Below the pieces are notes generated by a model. The model was given only the letters and a program-made list of their open reading frames with translations. It did no database searches and was not told the DNA's origin. DNA of 64,000 bases from Setoptus koraiensis (Eukaryota; Animalia; Arthropoda), in assembly GCA_048013815.1 (NCBI GenBank), contig CM106586.1, positions 11,098,001 through 11,162,000 of the forward strand. The letters run 5' to 3'. The translations under genes were made by a program, and so were the position numbers. This document shows positions 30,824 through 64,000 of this stretch, in pieces (position 1 is the stretch's first letter; every line of letters begins with the position of its first letter).

Positions 30824-33800
30824 ATGCACGTGGACGTTTGCCAGTCAGGCAATGGCACAAACCCCAACTCAAATCGTCATCGTCAACAGTATCAGTATAA
30901 TACAATACAACCACCGGTGGCAACATCACAACCTCCACTACCTAACCACCATGTGACACATGGTCAAAACAATGGCGGCCCTAGTGGTAATGGTGCCGCT
31001 AATTCACAACCACACCAACCTCTTCTAGCGCTTCACCAAAACTTCAACCAGCTATTGTCTCCGTTTCACAATCATCACCATCATCCCCATCTACCTCACC
31101 ACCACCACCATCATCACCATCATCCCCATCACCACCACCATAGGAGGAACCTTGGTGGTACGGATCAAACAAATTCGTCCACATCGAGCTCTGTTGCACA
31201 AAATAATCCGAATAAACAACACAAGAGCAGGCACCATCAACCAGTTTTCCAGCCAGATACACTACTAGATTTGAGCGCCAGAATTGTTGCCTTGAACATA
31301 CCCTTTCAAACAATAGAAGAGAAATATGAGAGGATACCAGAACCTGTACAAAGAAAAATTATCTTCTGGTCATTCCCTAGGAATGAAGATGACATTAAAA
31401 TGTACTCATCTTTGTCCAGTGAGTCTTCCTCTACGTCCAATTCGATTGGTAACAATTCCACCGCAACTACAACCACCACCTCCAACAACAATATTAACAA
31501 CAATAGTAATAGTAGCACTAACAACAATAATGCAAATTCACCTGTTATTCACAATAACAATGAGGCCTCTAACCAAAATTCAAACAATAGTAACTCTGGC
31601 AACAATGGCAATAATAATTCAACCAATAGACAAACCAACCAACAGCGCCTACCATTCTATAAGGGTCTAAAACTTTGCGAAAATGGAAGCGTCTTTGATG
31701 TCCTCCAGGTAGGATTCCACCTCAGTGGATGTATTAATCTTAAGACATACGGGTCATCTAGACATGGAGCAAACAGGAGTAACTTCACTAGTTTGAATTC
31801 TGCGAGCGGGAACAGTAATCAAACCAGCAACTCAAGCACAGGTTCTGAAAGTCAGAATGATCTCTTCGTGAAAAGTTATCGTGTATCCGTTACTTTTGAT
31901 CGATGCAAAATTATCTCTGTTTCCTGCACATGCGATTCGAGGGACATTTTTTGGTGCGAACATGTGGTAGCACTGATAATTTACAGAATTCGCAACCCAA
32001 AATCTATTGATCTCAGGGTTCCTATATCGGAGACTCTACTACAACTTGACAGACAACAGTTGCAGAAGCTGTTACAGTATATCATAGCAGAACATCACGC
32101 TGAGGTTATACCAACTGCACAGAGGCTTGCAGATGAAATCAGCCAGTCTGTATCCACCATCAACAAGATACAAGGTGCCCCTGATCCCACAGCCGGAGCA
32201 GGTGCTGATGACGAGCACATATGGCATCTGGATGAAAATCAAGTTAGTGAGAGGGTACGCTCTTATCTAAACTCCATCAATTCCAACTCCAAGGATACTG
32301 CTAAGCATATCAATGATATAATTGCATTGTTTGACAAAGTCAAAGAAATGTTAAGGGCCAAGGACTCGAATGGGCCAAGGATGCTTAGACTTATTACCGA
32401 ACAATTCCTCAACGGAAGTACGCGGAACGATAAGTGTAGACCTCTTTGGGATCAACTTGTTTCGCTTTGGGTTGTTGTCATATTGAATCCTCACAGTGAT
32501 CAGTCGGAGAGAAAGAAGTTCAAAAACTTACTCATCGATTGGTCTCATTTACCCAAATGTCCACAAGAGGATGTTGAATTTCGTTCTACAACCAATTATA
32601 GTACTGGAGTAAAAAGGAAAGCGTCGGAGTTGTCGGATGACGAGGATGCGGACGAAAGCATATACATGAACTGTCCATACTATGCTACTTTCAATCACAA
32701 TAATAACTTTCCTGCTCACATGTCCACCCACAATCATCGCTCCTCCTCTAATCCAGGCAATTACCTGATGCGTTCTTATCAGAACCACATGCTACCTCCA
32801 TCGTTCCCGCATTATTTGTACCCTCACTTACTTCAGATGGCACCCAATTGTGACAATTCCTTTTGTGGCTATCATCCAGGTTTCTCAAAAAATAGAGATT
32901 GTCATCATCATACTCATCATGATCCCACCTACACATCATATGCCAAATCACGCTTGCCACCATACAATTTATCGTGCAACCATCCTGGGAGACTTCCGTC
33001 TTACAATCCATCATTCCGATCCAATAACGTCCCTAGATCGGATGCAGCTCCATACTCGGGTCTACACAACCAGCCAAGATCCGCAAATTCTAGTAACTCT
33101 GGAAACCCTCCTCCTGCAGAGATTCACTCAGGGCCTAAAACTATTTTTCAAAGAGCTATCGATGTGAGCGATTTATCTTGGAACGATCCTCATTTAAGAT
33201 TGATATTAGAAAGTGACGAACCATCGGAACCAGATACTTATAAAATGCACTTGTTCGATTACAGAGGTTATCCACTTTGGCTTGAGCCTGTACCTGTTGC
33301 TTGTGCTCGTGTGGAGGCATTAAAATCTCATGGGTACAAGCAGCAATCTCTTAGACTGGCAGTTTCGATTGTAAGAACATTGAAACGTCATCAAGAGCAT
33401 TGGGAAGTTTGCGGCGGAAACTGCAACTCGGCTCTCGGTGAGTCGATAATGTGCAATTTAGAAGGCTGGCTAGGACATCCTTTTGATCCAATTGGTTCTC
33501 TATTTGATACACTCGTGGAAGCTTCAAGAACTTCTAACAAGGAGATCTCTGAACCTTGTTGCGATACGACAAGATGCTCTTGTATGTTTGGATTGAATAT
33601 GCCACATCCATTTGCTAGCCTTCAGGGAGCTCTGATGTTCCCTGACTTGTCTTCAACCTTTGATCATTATCCGCATCCATTCGATTTACCCAACTTTTCT
33701 ACAAGCTCAACTACGCAGTCAAGTTCTACCTCTGGCAGACGTCTTCTGAATCCTCCATCAAGTACGCTTAAAAACTCACAATATTATCATGTCCCAGTAC

Positions 33801-35464
33801 CCGGATGTCGTTATCAAAAAGATAGTTATCTCACACTCGCTATAGATGCCGCTTTGATAGCCTTGGGCCAACATCGGGCCATGCCATCAAATGGTGGAGC
33901 ACACGAGAAAGCGATAAGGCAAGAGAAAAATCTCATAACTAAACTTCAAGAGATTGAAGTTGAAACTGATCCCATCTTGACCGATGTTCTGAAACGACAG
34001 GTCGGTTTCATCCTTAATGGAGGACCGTACGCTAGCTCTTGCTGTAGCCCCATTACGGATCCTGCACCTCTTCATAAATATGCGCTTTACCTGTTCAACA
34101 CTTTGATTGGAAAAGATCCCAGACTTGCTTATCAGGTTGGAATATATGCACTGAAGATACCGGTACCGGCCGAAGATAATAACAATGAAGTTTTCGTCAA
34201 TGGTAATATGAACAATGGCCAGCTACCCCTTGTACAGCGTTCAATTAACTATGCTCATATACAGGCAGAACAACTAGCTTTAGCTGAGGGTATGCTCAAA
34301 ACTGCTAAAGATGATCGACCGAACAATTGTCTGAAAGACGTTTACGATGCCGCAATCGAAAACATTAGGATTCCAGCAAATCTATTCAAGCTGGCCAAAG
34401 CAGCTTCCAGCGCTGCTGTGCAATGTAACCCTGCAAGCAAATACCCGTCATTACAGAAGACATCATTCAAATTAGGCCAGCACGTACTGAAGATGACCAT
34501 GGCACCAACAGCAGCCAACGCTAAGACTAGACGCGATGTATTACAATCTATTGTCAAATGGGCCGTCGCATTGGGCTTTGAGGATACAATAAAATTTTTA
34601 CATTCGTGGCCTGATTATCTAGTGGCTCATGAGGCTGTTACTATGGTATCCAAGGAGCCTTTCACAACCCAAACTCAAATGCATCTCTCTCGAGAACAAC
34701 GACTCATGTTAGACAGCAAGATCAGAGATCTAGCTGTTGAGTGCGTGGAAAGAGACCCCTCTCAATGCGCCTTAGATGCCTTGAAATTGTGTGAACATGA
34801 CAAGACTAAATTTCAACAGGCATACAACCTCGTTATCGAGGCCGGAAAGAATAAAGAAATGGGCTCTGCTCAATTAATAGCAGTTGCAAGTTACCTGGAT
34901 AAGAAGCAACAGACACCGGAGGCTTACGAGATCGCATTAGTAGCAATAGAAAGTATGGTGATACCGTTCAATGTCGACAGTAGCGCCTCTTTCAGCGAAA
35001 TAGACACCACATGCGAGCTCGCTAGATCTATGGACGGTTTTGATAAGCTTATACCTATTCTGATAAACAATGTTCATTGTGCTCCAGTGCTGTCAGAAAT
35101 TTACAAGAGGTACAGGCCTGTTGCTGTTGATCTGAATTCTATCTACAATGGCGATGGGCATCATCAACCCGCCGATTACAGACGTAGATGTCTCACTAAT
35201 AAATATCATGCTGAGCAGAAATTATGGGAAACACTATTGCAGGCAGCTATACGGGCATATGGTCATACAACACAGACAAGATTGGAAAATATATCCCCAA
35301 GGCATTATGCAGAGTTTATCGACTTTTTGGATAAAGCACGACATACTTTTCTCTATGCACATGATGGTCTCGGAAGATTCATGTCTCTCATTCAAGGTAT
35401 CAAGAAGAATTACAAGACAAAAAAGAAGCTTATGGAAAGATTGAAGAATCGCTTTGATATTTAA
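30824..35464 (+). CDS. ZSWIM6: ZSWIM4/5/6-subfamily SWIM zinc-finger protein (BC-box/cullin-box type), intronless, 1546 aa
   Basis: PDTLLDLSARIVA...ERIPEPVQRKIIFWSFPR; SWIM finger FDRCKIISVSCTCDSRDIFWCEHVVAL; GAPDPTAGA; C-terminal ISPRHYAEFIDFL...KKKLM. These match ZSWIM5/6 as recalled rather than ZSWIM8. The symbol marks the subfamily only. Confidence 0.9.
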   Translation: MHVDVCQSGNGTNPNSNRHRQQYQYNTIQPPVATSQPPLPNHHVTHGQNNGGPSGNGAANSQPHQPLLALHQNFNQLLSPFHNHHHHPHLPHHHHHHHHHPHHHHHRRNLGGTDQTNSSTSSSVAQNNPNKQHKSRHHQPVFQPDTLLDLSARIVALNIPFQTIEEKYERIPEPVQRKIIFWSFPRNEDDIKMYSSLSSESSSTSNSIGNNSTATTTTTSNNNINNNSNSSTNNNNANSPVIHNNNEASNQNSNNSNSGNNGNNNSTNRQTNQQRLPFYKGLKLCENGSVFDVLQVGFHLSGCINLKTYGSSRHGANRSNFTSLNSASGNSNQTSNSSTGSESQNDLFVKSYRVSVTFDRCKIISVSCTCDSRDIFWCEHVVALIIYRIRNPKSIDLRVPISETLLQLDRQQLQKLLQYIIAEHHAEVIPTAQRLADEISQSVSTINKIQGAPDPTAGAGADDEHIWHLDENQVSERVRSYLNSINSNSKDTAKHINDIIALFDKVKEMLRAKDSNGPRMLRLITEQFLNGSTRNDKCRPLWDQLVSLWVVVILNPHSDQSERKKFKNLLIDWSHLPKCPQEDVEFRSTTNYSTGVKRKASELSDDEDADESIYMNCPYYATFNHNNNFPAHMSTHNHRSSSNPGNYLMRSYQNHMLPPSFPHYLYPHLLQMAPNCDNSFCGYHPGFSKNRDCHHHTHHDPTYTSYAKSRLPPYNLSCNHPGRLPSYNPSFRSNNVPRSDAAPYSGLHNQPRSANSSNSGNPPPAEIHSGPKTIFQRAIDVSDLSWNDPHLRLILESDEPSEPDTYKMHLFDYRGYPLWLEPVPVACARVEALKSHGYKQQSLRLAVSIVRTLKRHQEHWEVCGGNCNSALGESIMCNLEGWLGHPFDPIGSLFDTLVEASRTSNKEISEPCCDTTRCSCMFGLNMPHPFASLQGALMFPDLSSTFDHYPHPFDLPNFSTSSTTQSSSTSGRRLLNPPSSTLKNSQYYHVPVPGCRYQKDSYLTLAIDAALIALGQHRAMPSNGGAHEKAIRQEKNLITKLQEIEVETDPILTDVLKRQVGFILNGGPYASSCCSPITDPAPLHKYALYLFNTLIGKDPRLAYQVGIYALKIPVPAEDNNNEVFVNGNMNNGQLPLVQRSINYAHIQAEQLALAEGMLKTAKDDRPNNCLKDVYDAAIENIRIPANLFKLAKAASSAAVQCNPASKYPSLQKTSFKLGQHVLKMTMAPTAANAKTRRDVLQSIVKWAVALGFEDTIKFLHSWPDYLVAHEAVTMVSKEPFTTQTQMHLSREQRLMLDSKIRDLAVECVERDPSQCALDALKLCEHDKTKFQQAYNLVIEAGKNKEMGSAQLIAVASYLDKKQQTPEAYEIALVAIESMVIPFNVDSSASFSEIDTTCELARSMDGFDKLIPILINNVHCAPVLSEIYKRYRPVAVDLNSIYNGDGHHQPADYRRRCLTNKYHAEQKLWETLLQAAIRAYGHTTQTRLENISPRHYAEFIDFLDKARHTFLYAHDGLGRFMSLIQGIKKNYKTKKKLMERLKNRFDI

Positions 35465-47210: not shown

Positions 47211-49120
47211 TGCGGGCCGCAGAACGGCGGTCTCGCTAATGGTGCCACCAGGCAACCATTTGTGTGTGTTTGTGTCTGCATGTGCACAATCAGTCAGAGC
47301 GGGGGTCCGTCAATTTGTGCAATGCACGCCTGCTTGCTGAGCTATGAACTAGACTCTAGATACTGGAGAGAGGCGACGCCGAAAGAGAACGCTTATTTGC
47401 CATTCGTGCGCGATAATACATAGTTAGACGCGTAGCTGGATACACGGCTCGAGTTAGTCAGATTAATGTGGGCCCCAGTGGCGCCAGAGACACACGGCCA
47501 GAGATGGCGAGCGACACACAGCGAGCGGGGGCCCGAGAGAGGGAGCAAGGCAGGCGGTGTAAAGTGGCGCGTTCCATTTGCAATTCAGTTAGCGTGAGCC
47601 CGACAGCGGCCAGCCTGTGTCACGTAAACGATTACGCAACGTAACGCGCTCGCTGTGTCTGTTGTCGAGCTGTTTTTCCCCTCGCGCGCACACCCGACGG
47701 CTCATCCGGCCGCTGGTGGCGCCCCAATTGTAAGTGCTGTGTAAAGTATTACAAAGAAACAGAGCAAGACAGAAAAATGTGCGCCCGTCATCGGCGTAAC
47801 TTATTTCCGAGCTCGGATGGGAGCGTGAATGGGAGCTCGAATGGGAGCCCGAACGGGATACGCGGCGCAGCGGGTTCGCTATACATTGGCGCTGGGTGCG
47901 CTGGTGTGGCTGGGCAGCCCCTGTCGAGGCGCCGTTTCTGGCGCCACTCGCCGAAATGCCGCCAGAAACGGCCCAAAGTTGCAAGATGAAAGCGCCAAGG
48001 ACGCGCCTCGGCCGACGAGCGCACGTCAAGCGGGGCGACAAGAAATGGGGCCAAGACGCACGAGCGGCGCCCGCCAGCGTCGCTCGAGCCAGGGGCGGGC
48101 CCCTCAAGCTCACTGGCGAACAAAGTTGCACAAGTCGACGGCTCAAAGTGCCGGCCATGGCCAAGAATGAGAATGTCGGGCGCTGGCAGCTACCAGTGAC
48201 CGATACGCTTGCTTTCCTTGGGGGGCCCCTCCCTTCGTGCTGGCATCGACGTCCGCGCGATCTGTGATGCCGCGCCGGGAGCCGCCGCCGCTGCTGCCAC
48301 TGACGGCCCGCCGACCACCATTTTGATATTTGTCTCGCTACGCGAGCACCGTTATTATTATTATTATTATCATTACTATTACTGTTATTACTATTACTAT
48401 TACTGTTATTGGGTTCGGCAGTTGGCTCGCCATTCATATGGGGCCCCATACTGCTGTCAGTATGCGTTAGCCCCCCGAACGATATGCGCGTGTGCCGGCG
48501 CCGCATTAAGCTCGCCGAGAAGCTCGTGACAGGCGAGAAAGAGCAGACAAGGACAGCGTTTGACGTTACAACAGCCAGCCAGCCAGCCATGGCGGCCCCA
48601 ACAGCAAGTGCCCTAATGAAGCGATACTGGCGAGCTTGGCATACACACATCTAGTGGGCCCCCAAATGCCAAATGTGGCCAGCACGCCGGAGGGCGCCCC
48701 AATTGCTACAAATTCGTGCTTGCACGTACTCTGTTGAACGTGCCTCTTGCGGGGGGCGCCTGCATCCGCGCTTACGCTGACGAACAGCTCGTTGTGCCGC
48801 TGCACACTGCAGTTTGTCTCACAATGGGGCCCATTATATCGGAGCGCCCAGTTGGAGCAAGTGCGCCGCCAATAGGGTCGCGCATAAAATTGCCAAATCG
48901 CACGCTGGCCCCTCTGACATATCGCTGGCGAGCCGGCTGTGTGCTTGAGCGTCATTAAATCATCGACACGAGTATTTATTGTGTATAACAGCACCGATAC
49001 AACCAATACAACCGACAAGCGCTATGGATGGCCGAAAAAATGTGTGTGCAGTCATTATGATAATGAGCGAGCGTGCTTTTTGTTCAAACAATAATTAATT
49101 GGCGTCGATGTTTGGCGACA

Positions 49121-49186
49121 CTCTGCCCGATAGTGACTCTGCCCGATAGTGACTCTGCCCGATAGTGACTCTGCCCGATAGTGACT
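49121..49186. repeat. 16-bp perfect tandem repeat x4 (ctctgcccgatagtga)
   Basis: Four identical units plus 2 nt. Confidence 0.95.
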
Positions 49187-50075
49187 ATGGCCGGCTCGCC
49201 GGCGATTATTTCATGGTCGACGCGAGCTCGCAAGCGCCATCGTCATCCAGTTGGGGACTCTGTCGGCGGCCGACCGAATCGAGTATTGATTGCACTGGGC
49301 GCTGGCGGGGCCAGCAATAACACAATAATAAATAGTAACAGTTTTACAATGCATCATTGCGCAATATGACGTGCAAACGCTGACCCGTTCGCCACGCTTC
49401 GAAGCGCCAGTTGGCGGCTTGCGACTCGCGACTCGCGACTCAAAGTAACGAGCCGGCCCCTAATCTGGCCCGCGCTCATTAAGACTGCCGGGCCCGGCCG
49501 GCCGCAACAAGCTCACGGCGCGGCCGGCCCGCCCGCCCGGTTAACTGGTCACTGTGGCCGCAGTGACTCGCTACTAGTGAGAGTGGCGGAGTGTAGCGAA
49601 GCATAAATCGCGCTCTCATTTGGGGACCTGATTATGCGCATGCAAATTGGGCATATGCTGGCACGGCTGGGGCCGGGCATTTGAGCCGCTAATACCGGTA
49701 TGTTGTGATGCCGGCCCGCAGCCCCACAATTGCCGTTACACGCGGCCAGTTACACGCGTCGGGTTGTGGCGATATTTATATATCTATATATATATATATG
49801 TGGCGATATATCGCGCTGGCGAGCCATATTTGGCCAAAGAAAGACGTGACTCCATCCTGTTGTCAGTTGGCACTGACTGCGTCACAAAACGGGCGTCTGG
49901 GGCCAGTTAGCTAGCCGGCTGGCGTGGCACACAATGGCGAATAGCATAATGATGCTATTCGCCATCATATCATCCGCGCATAATATAATGGCGCCAGATT
50001 CATCTCTCGGGCCGGCCCGGCCGCCGCCGGTCTGGCCGCTCGCTAGTATTTTGGCGGCACGTCGAGCGCGCCGCC

Positions 50076-50124
50076 AAAATTGTGCCCTCGTGCGGGCTTG
50101 ACGCCCGCACGAGGGCACAATTTT
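50076..50124. repeat. Perfect 22-bp-arm inverted repeat with a 5-nt loop
   Basis: aaaattgtgccctcgtgcgggc-ttgac-gcccgcacgagggcacaatttt. An overlapping 11-bp hairpin lies at 50048-50058 / 50070-50080. Confidence 0.95.
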
Positions 50125-51829
50125 AGCAATCGCTGGCCCAACCAGCGCCAGTCAACGCGAGTGATACAAGCGGCGACGGGGTGAACGGTTGGCCAGATTA
50201 GCCAGCCGAGAGGCCACTTGAAACGGCGGCGGGGTCGGCCCCGCCAGGCGACTCGGGGCCCCAGTTTGGCGCTCGTGAGCGACAGTATTAGCGACAGTTT
50301 GTCTGTTCCTCTCTGGCATGCAAACTGCGTGCCAGCCAGAGGGGAACGGCCGCCGCTAGCGCGCCCTCAGCACCACTCACAGCCAGATAAAAGGGGCTCG
50401 CTTATTTATAAGGCGCCGCTGGGGAACGATGCACACACTCACGATATGTTCGTCATGTTCGCGGGCCCCCTCCCCCCGCGCCCCGATTCGTTATATTTCG
50501 CCTGGCTGGCGCGCATTTGTTATACGGCTCACATACGAGCGAGTTGTTGTTGTTGTGTGCGCCAAATTGGTTATATTCGGAGGGCCGACGCAACACAATG
50601 GGGCCCGCCGGACCAGTCACTTTTGGTTTGGCTGGGCGCTGCAACGGGGGGCGCCGACTCACTCAATCAGCCTGGCGAGCGCTTTGTGCACCAGACAATC
50701 GGTGGCTTCGCTGAGCGGCCTGGGCAACTCGCCGGAGCCCGCACTTTGCGTGGCTCACTGGCGGCTGGCTGGCCACAGTTGCCGCCGATGCAACGGGCCA
50801 AGCATTGGCGCCCCTGCTGCTCCCCTTTGTGGTGCACGGTGCGCCATTGGGGCGCCATTGGGGCGCGTACGCCCGCCGGGCGCCCCTAGGCCGCCGGCCC
50901 GATCGAGTGTGTGTACGTCGGGTGTGCGGCCGCCGTGTCCAGTTGGCCGGACCGAGCGTCGCCGATGTTCAGCGTAGCGAGGCTGTACATCGGCTGCGCA
51001 TCGGCTCGACATCGGCTGGACATTGGCTGGAATTTTCGGCAGAATGCGGCCCCATTCTGCTGCAAATGACGCCTAGCGGGGCCAGCGCCGCTTGATACCG
51101 TCACCGCTGGCGACACAGCACGTGGCAATAAGTTGCCGTTTGAGTGACCGTCGGCGGAGAAGTGTAGTTGTGGCCACTGGCACGAGCTTGTCGAGCTGAC
51201 TTGCTCGAGCACCGTTGGCCGCTGCAACACAAGTTGTATTATGTACAACCGACGACTACTCGGCCGACAAGCTCTCGTCGAGCTTATTCCGCTGACGCAC
51301 GACATGATGGTGGCGCCACCATGCAAGCCGCCATGTCGGGGCCCCAGATTGTGGTGGACCCGAGAGTGCACACACAGTGACACACTAGACGGTCTAGTGA
51401 CTAGACCGAATGTGTTATTTTTCTGGTCGGGTTTGTCGGTTCACCAGCGTGCCCTCCGTGTATCTGTGTTCGAAATACATGTACAGAATAGGTGTATTAC
51501 ACAGAGGTATGTTTCGTCCACTCGGGGCTACATTTCATTCACAGCATGCACGCTGGACCGCACCTTGTTTCACAGAACGTCAGACGGGCCCCTTTTGGCA
51601 AACAAAGAACGAGGCTCCTTTCATATTGTTTGCTCATAACTGAACCATATCTGAACCACAAATTGAGCAACACCAATTAATGAAGTTGCACTCCAACTGT
51701 TGGAGACATTGTCGCGGGCGTGCGACGTTCCGCTATTTGCGTTCAATTTATTGGAAATATCCTCCGTCTCGTTCCGATAGATTTCAGAACCGTTATAACC
51801 GTGGCTTCATTCGATCAAGTTTATTTGTG

Positions 51830-52960
51830 TCACTCGCCGCAAATATTTCACATTCTTCAGCTACAACAAACTGTCATTTGAAACTGTCAACTGAACTGTC
51901 TGCATTGGATAATCGGATATTATCATCGAATATCTATTTCGTCGCAAATGCTTTCAATTGACTTGTTGATGCTGAGCAATGCTGGTGCTCAGATAATAAT
52001 GGGCAATGACCAATTTCTTGCTAGTGTGACGCAATCAATCATTTAAGACACACTATGAGTGGTAGGCGCAATAGTTGATGGGGATTTAGTAGCTTTTGGT
52101 GATGAGCAGCTTATTGAATTAAAACTCTCAATCGATCGCAATTGCCATCATCTTTGCTAGTTGACGGACACCTACAACAAGGCCAGTCTCTGGTTTGTGC
52201 AATCTGAAATTGTCAACATAAATATCTGGCTCGCTAAACGATTAACGGCCAAACGAAGCCATCCAGCCACATGGCACATAATTGGATTTAAAAGACCGAT
52301 ATGGCCTAGACTCAATGAACGTCACTTTGGTCTTCAGGTGGCTATTAACGCAATCGCGTGATGGAAGCCGAAATGAGCTGCAATAACTGGAGCTTCCATC
52401 TAATGAGCCTGGGGGCCCGAAGGGGAGTGATGCGAGTAAGAATCAGTGTTTATCAACGATAATGCTGATGGACTATGCCAATCGAGAGTCGTTCTAATCA
52501 TGATTGCTACATAGCTGGACCAGACTGCACGGATTGAATCACATCTTGACCATTCATTCTGGTATTTAGTGATATCTATTGTAACTGGCGAAATGAGACT
52601 CGCGTTCCAGCCTTTTTAATGTGGCCACACCAATAAGACTAGCTAGGTCATTGTTGTCTAATACTGGTGGTTCAACGATAATCCAAGTATGATTTTTGCT
52701 TGTTCAAAGCTATCTTCGAATGTTCCAAAACTCGTGGCTGACTCTTCCTCTCGATATTGTTTTAATGCGCATTTTTCATGATGTCATTGGCAACACCGGA
52801 GAGAGGGCCTGAGCAAAATGATAATTACGTTCATCTCTAGCATTGAGTTATACCTGCTTTCAAATCCGTGTGAAGGATCATGAAATACCCGTTGTAGGCA
52901 GTGTCCGTTCCACGAACTATACCTAGAGGAGGTGCACGAAAACGGGCCTATCCCATATTT
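51830..52960 (+). mobile_element. Decayed non-LTR (LINE-like) reverse transcriptase relic, copy A; inverted relative to copies B and C
   Basis: Clear DNA homology with copies B and C from 52176 to about 52950. Frameshifted RT-like motifs appear in the expected order: DRYGL...RWLL, GGPKGS (52411; cf. GVPQGS), VFINDNADG (52446), HSWTRLHGLN (52510), YLVISI...LAFQP (52563). Many stops. The family call and left boundary are tentative. Confidence 0.5.
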
Positions 52961-53731
52961 TTGTGCAACTCCGCACAAAAATGCCGGCGTCATTTCAACA
53001 ACTGCCACAACAATGCCAGCACCACGACAATCGAGCGACTGACAAAAATGGGGCCTCAATGTGCGTCAGTCATTATCTAGTGTGTTCGCGGGAGGGCGGC
53101 AGGCTAGCCAGACGGCGATCCGAACATCGCAACGGGGAACAAGTGTCGGTGTGTGTAACTGTGTTCTCATTTGTACAGATACAGTGCTGATACTTCTCCC
53201 GTGCACCCGGCTCCCTTGCTCTACTTTTCCGCCACTCCCCCCAGCCGCACTGGGCGACCGGAGCCCGCGCCACGCATCCCGTTTCGATGATTCACGCTCA
53301 GTGCCTACAGTGGGGCCAATAGTGAGTCACTGCGAACAGGCCAGAGACGCGAGAGGCCAGCGACGCGGCAAGCGAAATGTCTCTTTTGGGGCTATGTTGC
53401 AAAAAGGCGCCCTCCATTTGGGCAGACGAAGCATCTTTCGTTGGTGGCGCGACAGCCGAGGGGACCAAAGATTGTGTGTGTGCGTAAGGAATTATTAGAT
53501 GGATATAGAGCCGAAATGGGGCGAATTAGATTGAATTGAACTCTTGCCGAATCGCTGCACCGAGCGGCAACACATAGCCAAAGGAACTCATAGCGGCAGC
53601 TTGCATGGGGCCAGCAGCGTCACCATCGGAATTGTTATTGCTTCATCGCAGTTCGTTGTCCTTACGTGCAAAGAACTTTGCTTCTTTCCGCGCGAATTTC
53701 TGGGGCCCCGACGCTTCCTCTGTGCGAGGCC

Positions 53732-53771
53732 GCTTGGCTGGCACGGGCTGCACAGCCCGTGCCAGCCAAGC
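53732..53771. repeat. Perfect 19-bp-arm inverted repeat with a 2-nt spacer
   Basis: gcttggctggcacgggctg-ca-cagcccgtgccagccaagc. A second hairpin with a duplicated arm follows at 53786-53822. Confidence 0.95.
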
Positions 53772-54025
53772 CCTGCCCTGGCTGCGCACTGGCGGCTGCC
53801 AGTGCCTCCGCAGCGCCAGTGCAGGGGCCCCAGAGAAGCTCTCTGACGAAGCCAGTGGCTCGTTCCTTGCCAGCGTGTGTGCGTGTGTGTGTGTGTGTGT
53901 GCGTGAGCCGTTGGCTGTCGCCCAAATAGCCGTTTCGCGCCGGAGTTGCGTGCTGCGGTGCACTGGCACACGCACACACACACGCACTCAATTTTGTAGT
54001 CGGTAGCCAACTACAATTGTGCAAT

Positions 54026-54029
<4 letters not shown>

Positions 54030-54089
<60 letters not shown>

Positions 54090-54177
54090 GGATAGAGGAG
54101 GCAACATTTGTCTGAGCCGACGACCCATCGAGCTTGAGAAGGCTCTCAAGCCCGACACACACACACGCACACGCACG

Positions 54178-54209
<32 letters not shown>

Positions 54210-54242
54210 CACACACACACACGCACACACACACACACACAC

Positions 54243-54272
<30 letters not shown>
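54030..54272. repeat. Compound (CA)n/(CACG) microsatellite
   Basis: Two blocks, about 54030-54085 and 54155-54272. These produce the spurious VC/HT ORFs in the ORF track. Confidence 0.95.
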
Positions 54273-54273
<1 letters not shown>

Positions 54274-54987
54274 AACGAGCGAACAGTGGGGCGCGTTGGG
54301 TGCGCGCATAAAAATGGAGAGGACCCGTCTGAGAGTGAGCAAGACTGCGAAGTGTGTTTTAATATCCGATAGCGGCCAGTAGTTGTTGCAAAAGTAGCTT
54401 CGTAGGCACCGCCATGAGTCACACAACGATAACTATAACAACGCTGCCAGACCCATATATATGTTCTATTTGTGTAATGCTACTTCTGGTGATAATGCTG
54501 ACGCTGCCAGTTGTGTGTATATATATATATATATATATGTTACCTAAGTAGTGGAAGCTAAGAAAGAATCAAAGAAGTACGCACAGCACACACAAAGAAA
54601 AGCTTGCTCGCCATCGAAGAGATAGAGGGGGCCAACGAGCGAGAGAGAGAGACGAATTTTGTTTTAGTGCGGCCCAGACGGCCAGGCGATGCCAGCGAAA
54701 ATGAGCGAGCCACAATCAGCGATCAGCGTTTGTCATTCCGTTTTGCATCGCCAACGAGAAAGATTGTATCCTCAATTGTAAAAATAATAATAATGATAAT
54801 CTCGTGCAATATTATCCCGTAGCCCACTGGTGGCAGAATCTCCAATAATACAATAATACAGTAACACACAATATTTCAGTAGACACAAAGTGCAAAAATC
54901 TAGCCGAAATAAAATTATCCGTATTATCCCATCACTTCAGCCGCGCTGCAATAATCAACAATCATCTCGTTTGTCTTCTCCGAGTTT

Positions 54988-55052
54988 CCTTATCATTCCG
55001 CTGTCCAGAATGAACCGAATTGCAATTTTCTGGACGGAGAACTGATAAGGCC
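54988..55052 (+). ncRNA. mir-184: miR-184 precursor; mature 3p at 55031-55052
   Basis: TGGACGGAGAACTGATAAGG(CC) matches the first 20 nt of conserved miR-184. The 5p arm CCTTATCATTC... at 54988 matches the typical star start and pairs with the mature arm. Confidence 0.95.
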
Positions 55053-55454
55053 ATAAGGAGAATAAAATCATCGTTCCATAAACACAAGCAAGCAAGTCGC
55101 AAAACTATTGTAATAAACAGATCATAACAACTGGGCCCACAAATATGGCGTCTTCGTTCGGCCGCGCGTTCGAAGCAGCAGCCCAAATCGCGTAGCCTTA
55201 GCAGAGTTCCCATTGAGTGAATTGAGTGCCAATACTCGCGGATACACAATTCGCGCAGCAGGCTTCGCTGAGAGGTAAGTATTTAGTTAGTTAGCCTCGA
55301 TGGTTGGTTAGTGTAGTAGCCCAATTTATTAGTGAACAAAAAAAACTGGCCCACTTCTATTATTACAATAAAAATCATATAATTCATTATATAGCAATAT
55401 CTAGAACAGTTGTCTCAATTTACGCTTCGATGAAATTTTTGCACAAGTCTAAAC

Positions 55455-56656
55455 GGAATAGGGTCGTTTCATCAATGTACATTTCATTTTCGTACAATTC
55501 CTCGACATGTAGCTCATAGAACTGTCTTTTCGTAGAACGAGTATTTCACAATTGTGCATTTCATACAGGTGTAATTTAATGCTAGAGATACCTTTGTTCA
55601 TTACTGTGAGAGAAGATGCAAATTTTTCAGGCCCTCTCTTTAGTGTCGCCAATAATCGTATAGGTGAAAAGAAAGCTGTATTAAAACAATGGCGAGAGGA
55701 AGGGTCAGCAACGAGTTTTGGAACATTCGAAGATAGCTTTGAACAAGCGAAAATCATACTTGGATTATCGTTGAACCACCAGTATTAGACAACAATGACC
55801 CAGCTAGTCTTATTGGTGTGGCCACATTAAAAAGGCTGGAACGCGAGTCTCATTTCGCCAGTTACAATAGATATCACTAAACACAATGAATGGTCAAAAT
55901 GTGACTCAATCCATGCAGTCTGGTCCAGCTATGTGTAGCAATCATGATTAGAACGACTCTCGATTGGCATAGTCCATCAGCAATATCGTTGATAAACACT
56001 GCTTCTTACTCGCGTTACTCCCCTTCGGGCCCCCCAAGCTCATTAGATGGAAGCTCCAGTTATTGTAGCTCATTTCAGCTTATATCACGCGATCGCGTTA
56101 ATAGCCACCTGGAGACCAAAGTGACGTTCATTGAGTCTAGGCCATATCGGTCTTTTAAATCCAATTGTGTGCCTTGAGGACCTAGCTCGATGGCTTAATC
56201 GTTTGGTGACCCGGATATCAATGTCGACAATTTTAGGCACAAACTCGGGACTGGCCTTGTTTTATGTCCAGGAAAATAAGTTGACTGTCTTGGAAGAAGT
56301 ACCATTATTGGGCCCCAGAAAATTAAGACGGCTACACATTCAGGAATGAAATTATCTCCATGTGACTCAGAGACTGCATTTTAATTGAGTTAATTCTTAG
56401 GAACCTTTTCAGTTGAAATTATCTATTTATTTATCTATTATGTCACTATCATTTAACTTAAAACTATCGGCGAATCACGGAAGGCTTAAAAATTGCGATA
56501 TCAATTGAAAAATTTTCTCGCGGAGTAAGCTAAGAACTGGGTTGAAACAATGAAGTCGCCATGGAACACCAGATCGAATTAAGTAAATGCATTTATAATG
56601 CGAAAAAATGGAAGATATTTCCAATAAATTGAACTCGAATAAGGGGAACGTTGCAC
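55455..56656 (-). mobile_element. Decayed LINE-like RT relic, copy B (about 1.2 kb; direct repeat of copy C)
   Basis: Aligns to 62659-63858 at an offset of about 7200. It is the reverse complement of copy A over about 55680-56261, and contains VFINDIADG on the minus strand. Duplication is certain; the LINE call is inferred. Confidence 0.6.
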
Positions 56657-56931
56657 GCCCGTGACAATGTCTTCGACTTGAATAATTGGTGTTGCTCAGT
56701 TCATGTTTTAGATCGTCTCCTATCTGAAGAGGGTGGTTTTACTTATGAGCGAAAATGAAAGAAGCTTCGTTCTTTGTTTGCCAGAAGTGGCTCGTCTGAT
56801 TCTATGAGACGGGCGCCCCCATCATGTACTGGTTCAGTTAGGGCAGCGGTGGATGTATCTCATAATTGGCATTATAATAATAGCATTACAATCCACTTGG
56901 GTTACATCTCACTTCTAAACAACATAGTAGA

Positions 56932-57004: not shown

Positions 57005-58857
57005 CATAGTTGGTTCGACGCTGCACTCCATCACTACTTGGGTGTCGTGGCTTATTCTTGATCTGATTTCGAGTGTATGTCATCGAACCAAATCCCTTGT
57101 CTATTTTGAACAGTTTCATACTTGACAACTTCTCTGAGGCTATAGCTATCATACTCTTTATCTTAACGTCAACGTTCTGGGTGGAATTTAAACAGTGTCT
57201 TTCCCGAGCCGTCTATTATTTCGTCGAGGCATTCTGCTTCATTTGTGTCGATCTTGTTATAAAGACTGTAGACAATTGACATGCTGCTATCTAAGCTGTC
57301 ACCGTAGTCGCAACAAGTGGTTGTTGTTGCGATCGAACATAATCCACTTTTTTGTTTGGATTTCATATAATCTAATGGGGACTGCATTTACACTACAGCG
57401 TTTCGTCATTCAAAACACCATCACTAACAGAGTGAAAATGTAGTTACCTAGATTGTCGATCAATAACAAAAGGCAGGTATGACAGTCTTATTCGGTCAAG
57501 CAGATATTATATTGATCGTTTCTTTATTTGCTTGGGCCACCTCCTACAAATCTTCATTAATGTAGCCTCAAGAAAAATAATCTAATGAGCACCATTATCT
57601 ATCACGATATCTTTTCTGAAATTGCTAGAGGAGGAGGGCATATGTTCAACATTCGTATGAACAACAAGAATTTCGTCTCATTACACAAAAATTTGTGGTT
57701 TATCATATCGTTGTTAGAAGCGACAGTTATCGACTGGTTAAGATGCCGCTAATCTCAGACGAAGAAGCTTCAGTGTTGCCATTACAACATCTCCCCTAAC
57801 TAAGACAATGATTCAAGAACGATTCCGAAGAACGATCATCAACAAGTTCAGAAACATCCTTTTGTTATTCTCGGCAGTCGAAAGAATCCAAGAAGCTAAG
57901 TCATTGACGGTGTTGCAGGCCTATGTTACATTTTCCACTGTTTCTATATTTCAGAGGAAAAAAACGTTCATCTATCTGGCTCTTATGACCACCACAATTA
58001 ATTATTATTTATTGAATGAAAATTAAGTAACTTGATCTCGCTAGAACAAACAATAAACTGGAACGAACTCAATGCACATGTAATGGTTTTGAAATAGATA
58101 AGCCCGAAGATATTTCCTATAAATTTAATGCAAATAATAGAAAATTGCAGGCATTCATTAATTGGTGTCATGTATACTATAAATGGAATGTACCGTCGAT
58201 GAGATATACTTCTATCATGTATACTTTCTATTAAGTGAACGCTGATGAAACAACCCAGACCCTTTTCAATTTGCTATGAAATTCTCGTTTATGGTTAGTG
58301 TCTAATCTATTTTAAGAGTTCATTCTTTGTCGGTCTAGACATCTAGACAAGACGTGGATATGTAAAAATTTTGAAATTAAATGTTGTTTCGGCTGAGGCC
58401 CCTGAAACGACTTTTTGATATTTTCACTCAATTCTCAATTGAAAAATTTCCGAAGCTTGATGAACACAGATAGTTGGAACAAGAATAGCTCGAACAGAGC
58501 AAGCAAAAATGATGATTATTTTAATGCATCCTTGAGCAATATTTCGAGACCGTAAAATGAGGTCGATCGCAGATACAAAGTAGATATTTTTAGATTGGGT
58601 GCACAAAATTCGTTCAGGGATATCAAAATCCACGTTGTCTACAAAGACAACTGTAAAGATACTACACCATATAGATGTGACTCATGGAAACCATAGGTAA
58701 TTCTGTTTGATACAAGTTCTTCTATCGTTTGGATTCATCCATCCTTAGATCAGTTCTAGTCTCCTATTGTTGAATTTATTGTTTGTGTCTGTTAGAACAT
58801 ATATTCAAAACACAATAAAAAGAACAAACTTGTGTCAAAAATACCTACAAGATCAAG

Positions 58858-60099
58858 ATGTCAAAAGTCTACATAACGTCTTTCTTCGTTGTTAGTCTTC
58901 TCTATGGCCTCCTTGTAATAAGTGAAGCTAATTTAGATGGCTTGATGGATACAATTAGTGTGCAATGCAATAAGAATCTATATGAATTCGTTTGTAAGTA
59001 GACTTTTACTACATTGAATCTATAGTTAACTATTAAAGTGTGGATGAATGATTAATCAGTCAATGAGCAACTGTAACACATCTCATTATCGCCTGTTTAG
59101 CTGCCTCAATGGATCTAGAGTTGGCACAAATTTGCATTGAAAATAATGCTTGCTTCACAGAGGAGGAGCAAATCGAACATTTTAGACCGGAAAGAGACGC
59201 ATTGCTGAAGGACTTTCCGACTGAATGCGAACGTTTGGGTGCTTGGAATATTACACTTAGCACCTTGATGACGTTTGTCAATACAATGAAAAATAAATCA
59301 GAATCTCTGGGTCGTTTAGATCTCAATCACACGAAAGATCTCAGTTGTGACACCAACGGTGACAACATCATTTCTGTGCTCGGTAAGTGTCTGCCCATCA
59401 TCGATGAAAATGCCCATTAGCTTTATTCGCCACTTACTTCGTATTTTATTGTATTTTCTAGACAAATTCCTGGAAGTTGCTCGTCACATGATTTGCGCTT
59501 GGCAAGAGCTTTGCTTCACGCCTGAGGAGTACAAAATTCGCCTGGCGGAAGCCAAGGAAAAAATCCTGACAGAATTCCGAGAGAAAAGTTGCAATTCCAT
59601 GACTAGCCTGACAAAAGCACAAGAGGGTCTCTTTATGAGTTGGTTAGAGGAATTATCAAAAGAGGGTCAAACATTGGGAAAGGCCCCGACTAAAGAAGCG
59701 TCAGGACCCGATGATGGCTTAGTCGAGGTGTCGAAAGATTTTGACGACGACGACGACGACGATGATGAGGAGGAGGAAACTGCTGCCGAGGGTGACCCTA
59801 AATCGCCAAATATCACAGATCCAGTGAATGTTAGCGATGAACCATTGGAGGTGTTGGTGGCAAGCAAAGATAAAATGCAACAACTCGAGGACATGTTGAA
59901 TAGTGACGATTACGTAGACGTTGAAACAGACGAGGAAGACGACGCTGGTTCGGATGATGAGCAACAGCAATTTGACTTCGACACGAATGCTCGTATACCT
60001 GAAACTCTAAACTCGATCAATGATATCCATATAGAACCCCAGTTTTCAGCTCACGACACAGCCGAATTCGACAAACATGAGAAGAAGGAGGAATTGTGA
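58858..60099 (+). CDS. Unrecognised ER-luminal protein, 351 aa (signal peptide, Cys-containing core, acidic tail, C-terminal KEEL); exons 58858-58993, 59101-59382, 59462-60099
   Basis: Both introns (107 and 79 nt) are GTAAGT...TAG and phase 1, and join into one open frame. Exon 1 encodes MSKVYITSFFVVSLLYGLLVISEA. The protein ends ...HEKKEEL. Confidence 0.8.
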
Positions 60100-61544: not shown

Positions 61545-62600
61545 ATGTTCGATTATGCTTTATTCAACGTGGACAACGGCTACCTCGAGGGAGTTGTGAG
61601 AGGCTTCAAGGATGGTATTTTGAAGCGTGGTGATTATCAAAATTTGGTGCAATGTGAAACTTTGGAAGACCTAAAAGTTCATTTACAAACAACTAATTAT
61701 GGCAATATATTGGCAAACGAATCTATTGTAAACGTCTCGGTAATCGAAGACAAATTAAGAGAGCAAGCTTGTCGAGAATTCCAATACCTACGCGCACAAG
61801 CATCGGGACCTCTGGCCACCTTTCTTGATTTCATCACTTACTCTTACATGATAGACAATATAATATTATTGATAACTGGAACCTTGCACCAGAGGCCCAT
61901 AGGCGAACTCATACCTAAATGTCATCCACTGGGCAGTTTCGATCAAATGGCGGCCATACATGTCGCACAAACGCCCGCCGAATTGTACAATGCCGTATTA
62001 GTTGATACACCTTTGGCACAATTCTTTTCTGATTCTGTCGCCGAAGAGGATCTAGATGAGTTAAATATTGAAATTATTCGAAATACTCTATACAAGTCAT
62101 ATCTTGAATCATTTTATGACTTTTGTAAAAACAAAATTGGCGGACGAACGGGCGAAGTTATGTGCGAGATACTCGCCTTTGAGGCCGATCGTCGCTGTTT
62201 CATCATAACAATCAATTCATTTGGAACAGAACTCACAAAAGACGACAGAGCAAAGCTCTATCCAAGATGTGGTCACTTGTTCCCGTATGGACTAACATCC
62301 TTGGCGCGTGCAGACGAATATGAGCAAGTGAGGCAAGTGGCTGACTTCATAAACGAATATCGCATTCTATTTGAGGGTTCCAGTGATGGTAGCTTAAACG
62401 ATGACAAAACTCTAGAAGACAGGTTCTTCGAGCACGAAGTCAGGCTTAATGTCAACGCATTCATGCAACAGTTTCACTTTGGAGTCTTTTATTCCTACAT
62501 CAAATTGAAAGAACAAGAGATACGTAATATTGTCTGGATAGCCGAATGTGTTGCTCAGAAACACAGAGCCAAAATTGATAATTACATACCAATATATTGA
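61545..62600 (+). CDS. ATP6V0D1: V-type proton ATPase V0 subunit d, intronless, 351 aa
   Basis: [71 protein letters not shown]. Family-typical length. Confidence 0.98.
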
Positions 62601-62658
62601 TCATTTACAATAATATTGCACTGTATACAAGACACGGCTCTACACAAGCTAAGTTATT

Positions 62659-63858
62659 GGAATAGGGCCGTTTCATCAACGCACATTTCATTTTCGTACA
62701 ATTCCTCGACATGTCATAGAACTGTCTTTTCGTAGAACGAGTATTTCACAATCGTGCATTTCATACAGATGTAATTTAATGCTAGAGATACCTTTGTTCA
62801 TTACTGTGAGAGAAGATGCAAATTTTTCAGGCCCTCTCTTTAGTGTCGCCAATAATCGTATAGGTGAAAAGAAAGCTGTATTAAAACAATGGCGAGAGGA
62901 AGGGTCAGCAACGAGTTTTGGAACATTCGAAGATAGCTTTGAACAAGCGAAAATCATACTTGGATTATCGTTGAACAACCAGTTTTAGACAACAATGACC
63001 CAGCTAGTCTTATTGGTGTGGCCACATTAAAAAGGCTGGAACGCGAGTCACATTTCGCCAGTTACAATAGATATCACTAAACACAATGAATGGTCAAAAT
63101 GTGACTCAATCCATGCAGTCTGGTCCAGCTATGTGTAGCAATCATGATTAGAACGACTCTCGATTGGCATAGTCCATCAGCATTATCGTTGATAAACACT
63201 GCTTCTTACTCGCATTACTCCCCTTCGGGCCCCCAGGCTCATTAGATGGAAACTCCAGTTATTGTAGCTCATTTCAGCTTTCATCACGCGATCGCGTTAA
63301 TAGCCACCCGAAGACCAAAGTGACGTTCATTGAGTCTAGGCCATATCGGTCTTTTAAATCTAATTATGTGCCATGAGCGAGGACCTAGCTTGATGGCTTA
63401 ATCGTTTGGCGACCCGGATATTAATGTTGACAATTTCAGGCCAAAACTACAGACTGGCCTTGTTTTATGTCCAGGAAAATAAGTTGACTGTCTTGGAAGA
63501 AGTACCATTATTGGGCCCCAGAAAATTAAGACGGCTACACATTCAGGAATGAAATTATCTCCATGTGACTCAGCGACTGCATTTTAATTGAGTTAATTCT
63601 TAGGAACCTTTTCAGTTGAAATTATCTATTTATTTATCTATTATGTCACTATCATTTAACTTAAAACTATCGGCGAATCACGGAAGGTTTGAAAATCGCG
63701 ACATCAATTGAAAAATGTTAGCGAGAAGTAAACTCAGAATTGGGTTAAAACAATTAAGTCACCATGGAACACCAGATCGAATTAACTAAATGCATTTATA
63801 ATGCAAAAAAATGGAAGATATTTCCAATAAATTGAACGCGGATAGCGGAATGTTGCAC
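62659..63858 (-). mobile_element. Decayed LINE-like RT relic, copy C, starting about 60 nt after the V-ATPase d stop codon
   Basis: Direct repeat of 55455-56656 with essentially the same end points (ggaatagg...gttgcac). Confidence 0.6.
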
Positions 63859-64000
63859 TGTATCAGTTTGTTTATTTTCACTTAGAGAACTCTTCTAATG
63901 TTAATGACACCTACATCCACCCTGTTTCGTCAATGCTGCGAGAATGAGGTCCTCAAGTTTATTAATCTATGATGGTCAAATCATTCTGAGCCTTGGGTTG

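Follow-up and report, generated by a model that had tools for sequence, protein, structure and literature searches.

A mir-184 gene flanked by two inverted, decayed copies of a GAS2-type gene-fragment repeat in the genome of the mite Setoptus koraiensis

We analyzed a 64,000-nt stretch of the Setoptus koraiensis genome (the window; contig CM106586.1, positions 11,098,001 to 11,162,000) in which a mir-184 hairpin lies between two long inverted repeat arms. This arrangement probably represents an ordinary, conserved mir-184 gene that resides in a single-copy intergenic segment of about 2.6 kb and is bracketed, by chance, by two decayed repeat copies in the head-to-head orientation. The sequence-level tests lean against a dedicated architecture in which the arms clamp the miRNA within a double-stranded RNA, because the arms are decayed members of a dispersed family, the similarity between them is not arm-specific, the paralogous mir-184 locus has no such arms, AATAAA signals precede the downstream arm, and the introns in the vicinity are short. 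The locus mainly shows how inverted repeat pairs that arise by chance can mimic designed RNA architectures.

The mir-184 precursor hairpin (54976-55062, + strand) was identified by its match to the Rfam family RF00657, by its fold, and by an exact 20-nt match to the mature miRNA. In an E-value scan of Rfam (701-nt search), the hairpin matched the full length of the RF00657 model (positions 1-86) with a score of 47.2 bits and an E-value of 5e-9. This score is below the gathering score of the family, 54.1, which is why the default, gathering-threshold Rfam scan gave no match at all in the window and the hairpin was recovered by the E-value scan. The predicted folding energy is -34.8 kcal/mol (z-score of -4.4), and none of the 200 shuffled sequences folded equally well. 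The mature 3p arm, UGGACGGAGAACUGAUAAGGCC (55031-55052, + strand), is identical to the Rfam consensus in 21 of the 22 positions, and its seed, GGACGGA, is that of the mir-184 family. Both its sequence and its fold place the hairpin in this family, with the canonical stem-loop geometry, which bears out the claim of the preliminary description that a miR-184 hairpin is present here. It differs from other mir-184 genes in scoring under the gathering threshold and in the sole substitution in the mature arm, a C in position 21, which is found in both mir-184 paralogs of this genome.

The hairpin is embedded in a single-copy centre of 2.6 kb (52820-55454) that is GC-rich at 53000-54000 and contains CA/GT microsatellites (approximately 53868-54300); matches to the centre elsewhere in the genome come only from the microsatellites. 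The ORFs in the centre showed no Pfam match, and no coding potential was found for them. On both sides, the centre is bordered by the inverted arms. The inverted repeat of about 590 bp noted previously (52176-52766 and 55680-56261) is real and extends further: the gapped blastn alignment of 52170-52819 with 56267-55622 shows 88.3% identity over 660 columns (E-value of 0), and a weaker outer inverted pair links 51567-51765 with 56810-56610 (69.5%). The ungapped blocks of the arm pair are 91-97% complementary, with seven perfect arm-arm runs of at least 21 nt that sum to 321 nt, the longest spanning 80 nt.

Both arms are copies of a repeat that carries a fragment of a GAS2-type CH-domain gene. 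An intact 877-aa copy of this gene is present elsewhere on the same chromosome as the window; the ORF contains the Pfam CH domain PF00307 and matches GAS2 in the PDB with an E-value of 5e-22. Arm A (51567-52819, with the sense strand on -) aligns by blastn with the other repeat copies and by tblastn with amino acids 359-794 of the intact ORF. It is truncated at the 5' end by 167 nt relative to the repeat unit, and the core it has in common with arm B is 52170-52819. Arm B (55455-56846, sense strand on +) starts at the common 5' terminus of the family, and its portions complementary to arm A are 55622-56267 and 56610-56810. The arms are thus unequal, given the 5' truncation of A and the different internal deletions. 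The homology of both arms to the intact ORF is colinear and is interrupted by stop codons and frame changes, as is typical of pseudogenes, and large internal deletions are apparent relative to that ORF. Judging from these sequence features, the arms are pseudogene-like copies of a dispersed repeat and not a dedicated clamp.

The repeat family includes about 30 matches across the genome, on both chromosomes, with 66-95% identity. The repeat unit consists of a 5' module of approximately 450 nt, which is absent from the intact gene, followed by the GAS2-type gene fragment. The 5' terminus is sharp and common to five repeat loci with unrelated flanks. Neither terminal inverted repeats (TIRs) nor target-site duplications were seen at the termini of the family, domains of a reverse transcriptase or transposase were likewise absent, and the transposon reading of the arms was rejected. 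The idea that the arms represent the 3' end of a LINE was abandoned as well because the gene fragment proved to be encoded in the opposite direction.

The window contains a third copy of the repeat, C (62659-63858, + strand), a direct repeat of B (95%) that begins 59 nt past the stop codon of the gene for V-ATPase subunit d; the end of this V-ATPase gene, together with copy C, is duplicated on the other chromosome. A small CH-domain fragment of the repeat was additionally identified at approximately 58052-58270 (+ strand) by DNA matches and by tblastn (amino acids 713-757), so that the 12-kb neighbourhood holds three copies and one fragment. Pairwise identities are 90.1% for A-B, 90.8% for A-C, 91.4% for A-D, 96.1% for B-C and 98.3% for C-D, and copies B, C and D appear to have one frame change in common, as read by eye from the aligned copies. 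Arm A is no more similar to arm B than it is to the copies that do not flank the hairpin, and therefore there is no sign of maintained complementarity. By simple arithmetic, three randomly oriented copies would include one or more inverted pairs with a probability of 75%. Given that gene-fragment repeats cluster in this compact mite genome, inverted pairs are to be expected, and the inverted layout around mir-184 would have arisen incidentally as repeats were inserted or duplicated locally.

A core of 2.6-2.9 kb enclosed by long inverted arms could also suggest a composite mobile element, of the foldback type or with long TIRs, that carries the miRNA as cargo. However, the core is single-copy in the genome, the other repeat copies occur singly, arm A is short by 167 nt and differs from arm B in its internal deletions, the inner arm ends are not equivalent, and the family termini bear no TIR or target-site duplication. 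The arm-core-arm unit is not repeated in the genome, so this scenario is largely refuted and has to be considered extremely improbable. The head-to-head orientation of the copies, with the sense strands pointing outward from the GC-rich centre, is also what would be expected of live CH-domain genes or exons whose divergent transcription originates in the centre, the 5' region of the gene on the right then including miR-184. However, stop codons and frame changes occur even within the conserved CH motifs of both copies, which additionally have lost large internal segments compared to the intact ORF, so that live genes appear very unlikely. Furthermore, divergent sense transcripts would be alike rather than complementary and therefore would not form a duplex.

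The immediate surroundings of the hairpin contain splice-like motifs. An acceptor-like motif, a pyrimidine-rich tract that ends in CAG (54926-54940, + strand; 11 pyrimidines among the 15 preceding nucleotides), places a candidate AG at 54940; among the 480 nt 5' of the hairpin (54500-54976), no other site resembles an acceptor as closely. Downstream of the hairpin, there is a donor-like motif, AG/GTAAGT in the context GAGAG/GTAAGT (55273-55280, + strand), with the G of the candidate donor at 55275. Thus, the acceptor, the donor and the intervening 334-nt candidate exon of the preliminary description can all be read directly in the sequence as motifs. On the + strand of the entire window, AGGTAAGT occurs just once, at this donor-like motif; GTAAGT alone is expected by chance in about 4% of 400-nt segments. 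GTAAGT is also the start of both real introns seen in the neighbouring gene. Because the motif at 55275 is unique on this strand of the window and matches the real donors of the genome, a spliced host transcript that extends towards arm B is plausible. Between the hairpin and arm B, there are three AATAAA hexamers of the polyadenylation type (55061, 55112 and 55367; 55061-55372, + strand); the average density of this hexamer across the window is 0.67 per kb.

If mir-184 is an ordinary gene bracketed by chance, the pri-miRNA would be cropped by Drosha as usual, and its source transcript need not include both arms. This transcript could be a short non-coding RNA that is spliced or polyadenylated, with use of the 54940 and 55275 sites or the AATAAA signals at 55061-55367, and miR-184 biogenesis would involve no dedicated function of the repeats.

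Inverted repeats in flanking introns, such as Alu elements, promote back-splicing of circRNA exons. The mir-184 locus resembles this arrangement in that reverse-complementary copies, with 88% identity over 660 columns, flank an AG/GT-bounded segment; here, in contrast, the splice sites are candidate motifs, and the introns they would imply are much longer than is usual in this neighbourhood. A long, imperfect duplex is a physical possibility in the sense that it would form if a single + strand RNA spanned both arms. Accordingly configured, a + strand primary transcript with an arm-arm duplex extending for about 650 bp (and for as much as approximately 1.2 kb) could drive back-splicing at 54940/55275, or dicing or editing, in competition with Drosha. 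We consider this unlikely. The two reverse-complementary arms that flank the hairpin, the splice-like motifs that are better than the background, and an acceptor-like CCCTCTCTTTAG within arm B, 369 nt downstream of the donor-like motif, are all compatible with such a structure, and the perfect arm-arm runs would be ample for Dicer or ADAR if present on one RNA. Moreover, repeat-rich loci in mites are known to give rise to dsRNA precursors that are processed into Dicer-dependent siRNAs (PMC5805368). However, a single transcript across 5.3 kb would be required, and the AATAAA hexamers come before arm B; the flanking introns would have to exceed 2.1 kb on one side and reach about 1 kb on the other, compared to only 79-107 nt in the two real introns next door. 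The conservation between the arms is not specific to them, and the paralogous mir-184 locus lacks inverted arms. Still less likely, to the point of being quite improbable, is the further possibility that the duplex of pseudogene arms on the pri-miR-184 host transcript couples cropping to back-splicing or dicing, so that miR-184 output would be tuned by the long-dsRNA pathway. If the clamp were real, the maturation of a conserved miRNA would compete with circularisation or RNAi in a natural setting, which would be of interest to RNA biologists. A non-exhaustive literature search uncovered no report of inverted repeats on either side of a mir-184 locus.

Hairpin-RNA (hpRNA) endo-siRNA loci are known from Drosophila (PMC10317233) and are built from duplicated gene fragments in inverted orientation. 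The arms analyzed here are likewise inverted fragments of a protein-coding gene that is represented by an intact relative at another genomic site, and are complementary enough for perfect 21-nt duplexes. In contrast, they are only about 88-90% complementary and 2.8 kb apart, and belong to a dispersed family instead of deriving from the target gene by a fold-back at its own locus. Identity between the arm cores and the intact CH-domain ORF is no more than 71-74%, and the longest exact matches to it are 17-21 nt, so that a trans target of arm siRNAs is doubtful and an hpRNA aimed at the intact parent gene is a weak candidate.

A search for exact 20-nt matches to the mature miRNA revealed the second mir-184 paralog on the other chromosome. 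There is no inverted repeat within 10 kb on either side of that locus, nor a splice-motif pair comparable to 54940/55275. Beyond this genome, an exact-protein look-up with the V-ATPase subunit d and two pattern scans of metagenomes, for the hairpin and for the mature miRNA, gave no matches, a result that carries no information on conservation. Apart from the question of the arms, the analysis yields two modest results, namely, the description of a dispersed repeat family that carries a GAS2-type gene fragment and the pair of mir-184 paralogs, one of which has a lengthened terminal region (loop).

The stretch contains a mir-184 hairpin, as claimed in the preliminary description. In an E-value-based Rfam scan of 54700-55400, mir-184 (RF00657) is matched end to end at 54976-55062 on the plus strand (47.2 bits, E 5e-9), compared with only 27.6 bits for the minus strand; the plus-strand score is below the family gathering score of 54.1 bits, and a default Rfam scan returns no match for this hairpin. 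The mature 3p arm, UGGACGGAGAACUGAUAAGGCC, differs from the family consensus by one mismatch, at position 21, and the 111-nt hairpin stretch has a folding energy of -34.8 kcal/mol (z -4.4), with none of 200 shuffles equal or better. The inverted repeat reported around the hairpin is likewise present, as are the splice-like motifs, and turns out to be more extensive than originally described. The main arm pair, 52170-52819 versus 56267-55622, aligns at 88.3% over 660 columns in gapped blastn, with ungapped blocks of 53-205 nt that are 91-97% complementary, and blastn detects an outer, weaker pair (51567-51765 versus 56810-56610, 69.5%). The two arms share seven perfect runs of at least 21 nt, the longest of 80 nt, and their pairing would be physically certain if one RNA spanned both. 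All expectations for a dedicated, maintained structure that could be tested on the sequence gave negative results, namely, arm-specific similarity, presence at the mir-184 paralog, unit-level repetition, and a credible target in trans. The best reading of the locus, and in our judgment a fairly probable one, is a normal mir-184 gene within a repeat-littered intergenic stretch.

The arms, A (51567-52819, minus strand) and B (55455-56846, plus strand), are not unique to the mir-184 locus. Arm B forms the beginning of a stretch of 1.2 kb (55455-56656) that is repeated in direct orientation, at 95%, at 62659-63858 (copy C). A search of the same genome identified a fourth copy, D, on the other chromosome, within a segmental duplicate of copy C that shares flanks on both sides (98.9%), as well as about 30 further, older matches at 66-83%. 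The duplicated segment of the window, 62283-64000, comprises the final 318 nt of the gene for V-ATPase subunit d along with copy C and corresponds to L011:5494-7211, a stretch of the other chromosome, at 98.9%; the duplication continues beyond the window end and, judging from the sequence, appears to be a recent copy of the 3' end of a gene made between chromosomes. At five loci whose upstream flanks are unrelated, the repeat copies start at one common point, GGRATAYGGTCGTTTCATC. An exact-protein look-up of the V-ATPase subunit d gene gave no match, nor did metagenome pattern scans for the mir-184 hairpin and its mature sequence, and these negatives carry no information on conservation.

An intact related ORF of 877 aa is located on the same chromosome as the window (G000:C2:1617087-1619717, or L005:538-3171 in local coordinates; plus strand). 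It contains a GAS2-type calponin-homology domain (Pfam PF00307; PDB 9kbx, GAS2, E 5e-22) into which a low-complexity stretch of about 270 residues is inserted, dividing it in two. When this ORF was compared with the window using tblastn, arm A (52418 down to 51575, minus strand; aa 359-794), arm B (55956-56846, plus strand; aa 338-808) and copy C were all found to be colinear with it and interrupted by stops and frame changes, the internal deletions differing between A and B; a small extra fragment of the repeat was detected at about 58052-58270. On visual inspection of the alignment, B, C and D apparently have in common the frame change located between WLNRL and FGDPDINVDNF; if so, these copies were already dead at the time of copying. 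About 30 decayed fragments of the ORF, on both chromosomes, are joined to a 5' module, about 450 nt long, that has a sharp common terminus and is missing from the intact gene, an arrangement that suggests a gene-fragment-carrying repeat. Neither a TIR nor a TSD was found in the repeat, nor any protein domain typical of transposons, and we accordingly treat it as an unclassified dispersed repeat carrying a gene fragment.

Within the shared core, identity is 90.1% for A-B, 90.8% for A-C and 91.4% for A-D, and reaches 96.1% for B-C and 98.3% for C-D. Thus, arms A and B are no more alike than A and the non-flanking copies C and D; nothing points to selection or conversion preserving arm complementarity. 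If the three local copies were oriented at random, at least one inverted pair would be expected in three cases out of four. A mobile composite of the arm-core-arm type can be ruled out because the 2.6-kb centre (52800-55460) has no matches elsewhere in the genome other than CA/GT microsatellites.

A second mir-184 is encoded on the other chromosome (G000:C1:12231110, plus strand), its 28-nt mature region identical to that of the window copy. This hairpin (L012:1400-1532, that is, G000:C1:12231009-12231141) has an Rfam score of 35.4 bits and contains about 59 additional nt in the terminal region, yet it still folds well (-37.6 kcal/mol, z -4.7). Such lengthening fits the reported trend toward longer miRNA hairpins in invertebrates, with mir-184 among the families concerned (PMC12553114). 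The 10 kb on each side of the paralog contain neither an inverted repeat nor any other homology to the window, nor a comparable AG...GTAAGT pair.

The acceptor at 54940 and the donor at 55275, proposed to delimit an exon carrying miR-184, are both present as motifs and are somewhat better than chance. AGGTAAGT occurs only once on the plus strand of the 64-kb window, at the candidate donor, and a GTAAGT would fall by chance in about 4% of 400-nt stretches. Pyrimidines occupy 11 of the 15 positions before the AG at 54940, and no better site of this kind occurs in the 480 nt preceding the hairpin. The neighbouring acidic-protein gene (plus strand) has two introns, 58994-59100 (107 nt) and 59383-59461 (79 nt), which start with GTAAGT and end with a T-rich tract and AG, providing local examples of the splice signals of this genome. 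A single plus-strand RNA might carry both arms and form a duplex around the candidate miR-184 exon, leading to back-splicing, siRNAs or editing; the DNA gives neither proof nor disproof of this possibility. The identity of the candidate donor with the starts of these two real introns (GTAAGT at 58994 and 59383) favours a spliced host RNA. Against the duplex model, these two introns are only 79-107 nt long, far shorter than the flanking introns it would need, one exceeding 2.1 kb and the other of about 1 kb. Furthermore, the interval between the hairpin and arm B contains three AATAAA hexamers (55061, 55112 and 55367), a motif that averages 0.67 per kb across the window. On the other side of the hairpin, GC-rich sequence and a TATAAA (54456) separate it from arm A, and a promoter in that interval, if present, would exclude arm A from the transcript. 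An acceptor-like CCCTCTCTTTAG inside arm B, 369 nt downstream of the candidate donor, also favours a spliced host RNA and would, if used, make this arm exonic rather than intronic.

Because the arms derive from a gene fragment, we asked whether siRNAs produced from them could reach the intact 877-aa gene. The longest exact matches of the arms to this gene are 17 and 21 nt, with core identity of 71-74%, and at the sequence level, silencing in trans appears poorly supported. In mites, Dicer-dependent siRNAs arise from dsRNA precursors at repeat-rich loci (PMC5805368), so incidental small RNAs from such arms would be unsurprising. Mite small-RNA surveys include mir-184, and the literature searched gave no account of inverted repeats around a mir-184 gene.

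Several other features of the neighbourhood were observed. A GC-rich block (49000-51400, 54-66% GC) contains long overlapping ORFs on both strands, none with a Pfam match and all with junk-like translations. Located 20 kb upstream of mir-184, a single ORF of 1546 aa (30824-35464, plus strand) has TPR domains and a ZSWIM8 C-terminal domain; target-directed miRNA degradation uses ZSWIM8 as its ligase, and this proximity is probably a coincidence. Just past arm B, the segment 56828-57720 recurs at 71-80% some 47 kb downstream of the window (G000:C2:11207864-11209584), partly as an inverted pair (11207864-11208122 on the plus strand and 11209234-11209584 on the minus strand).
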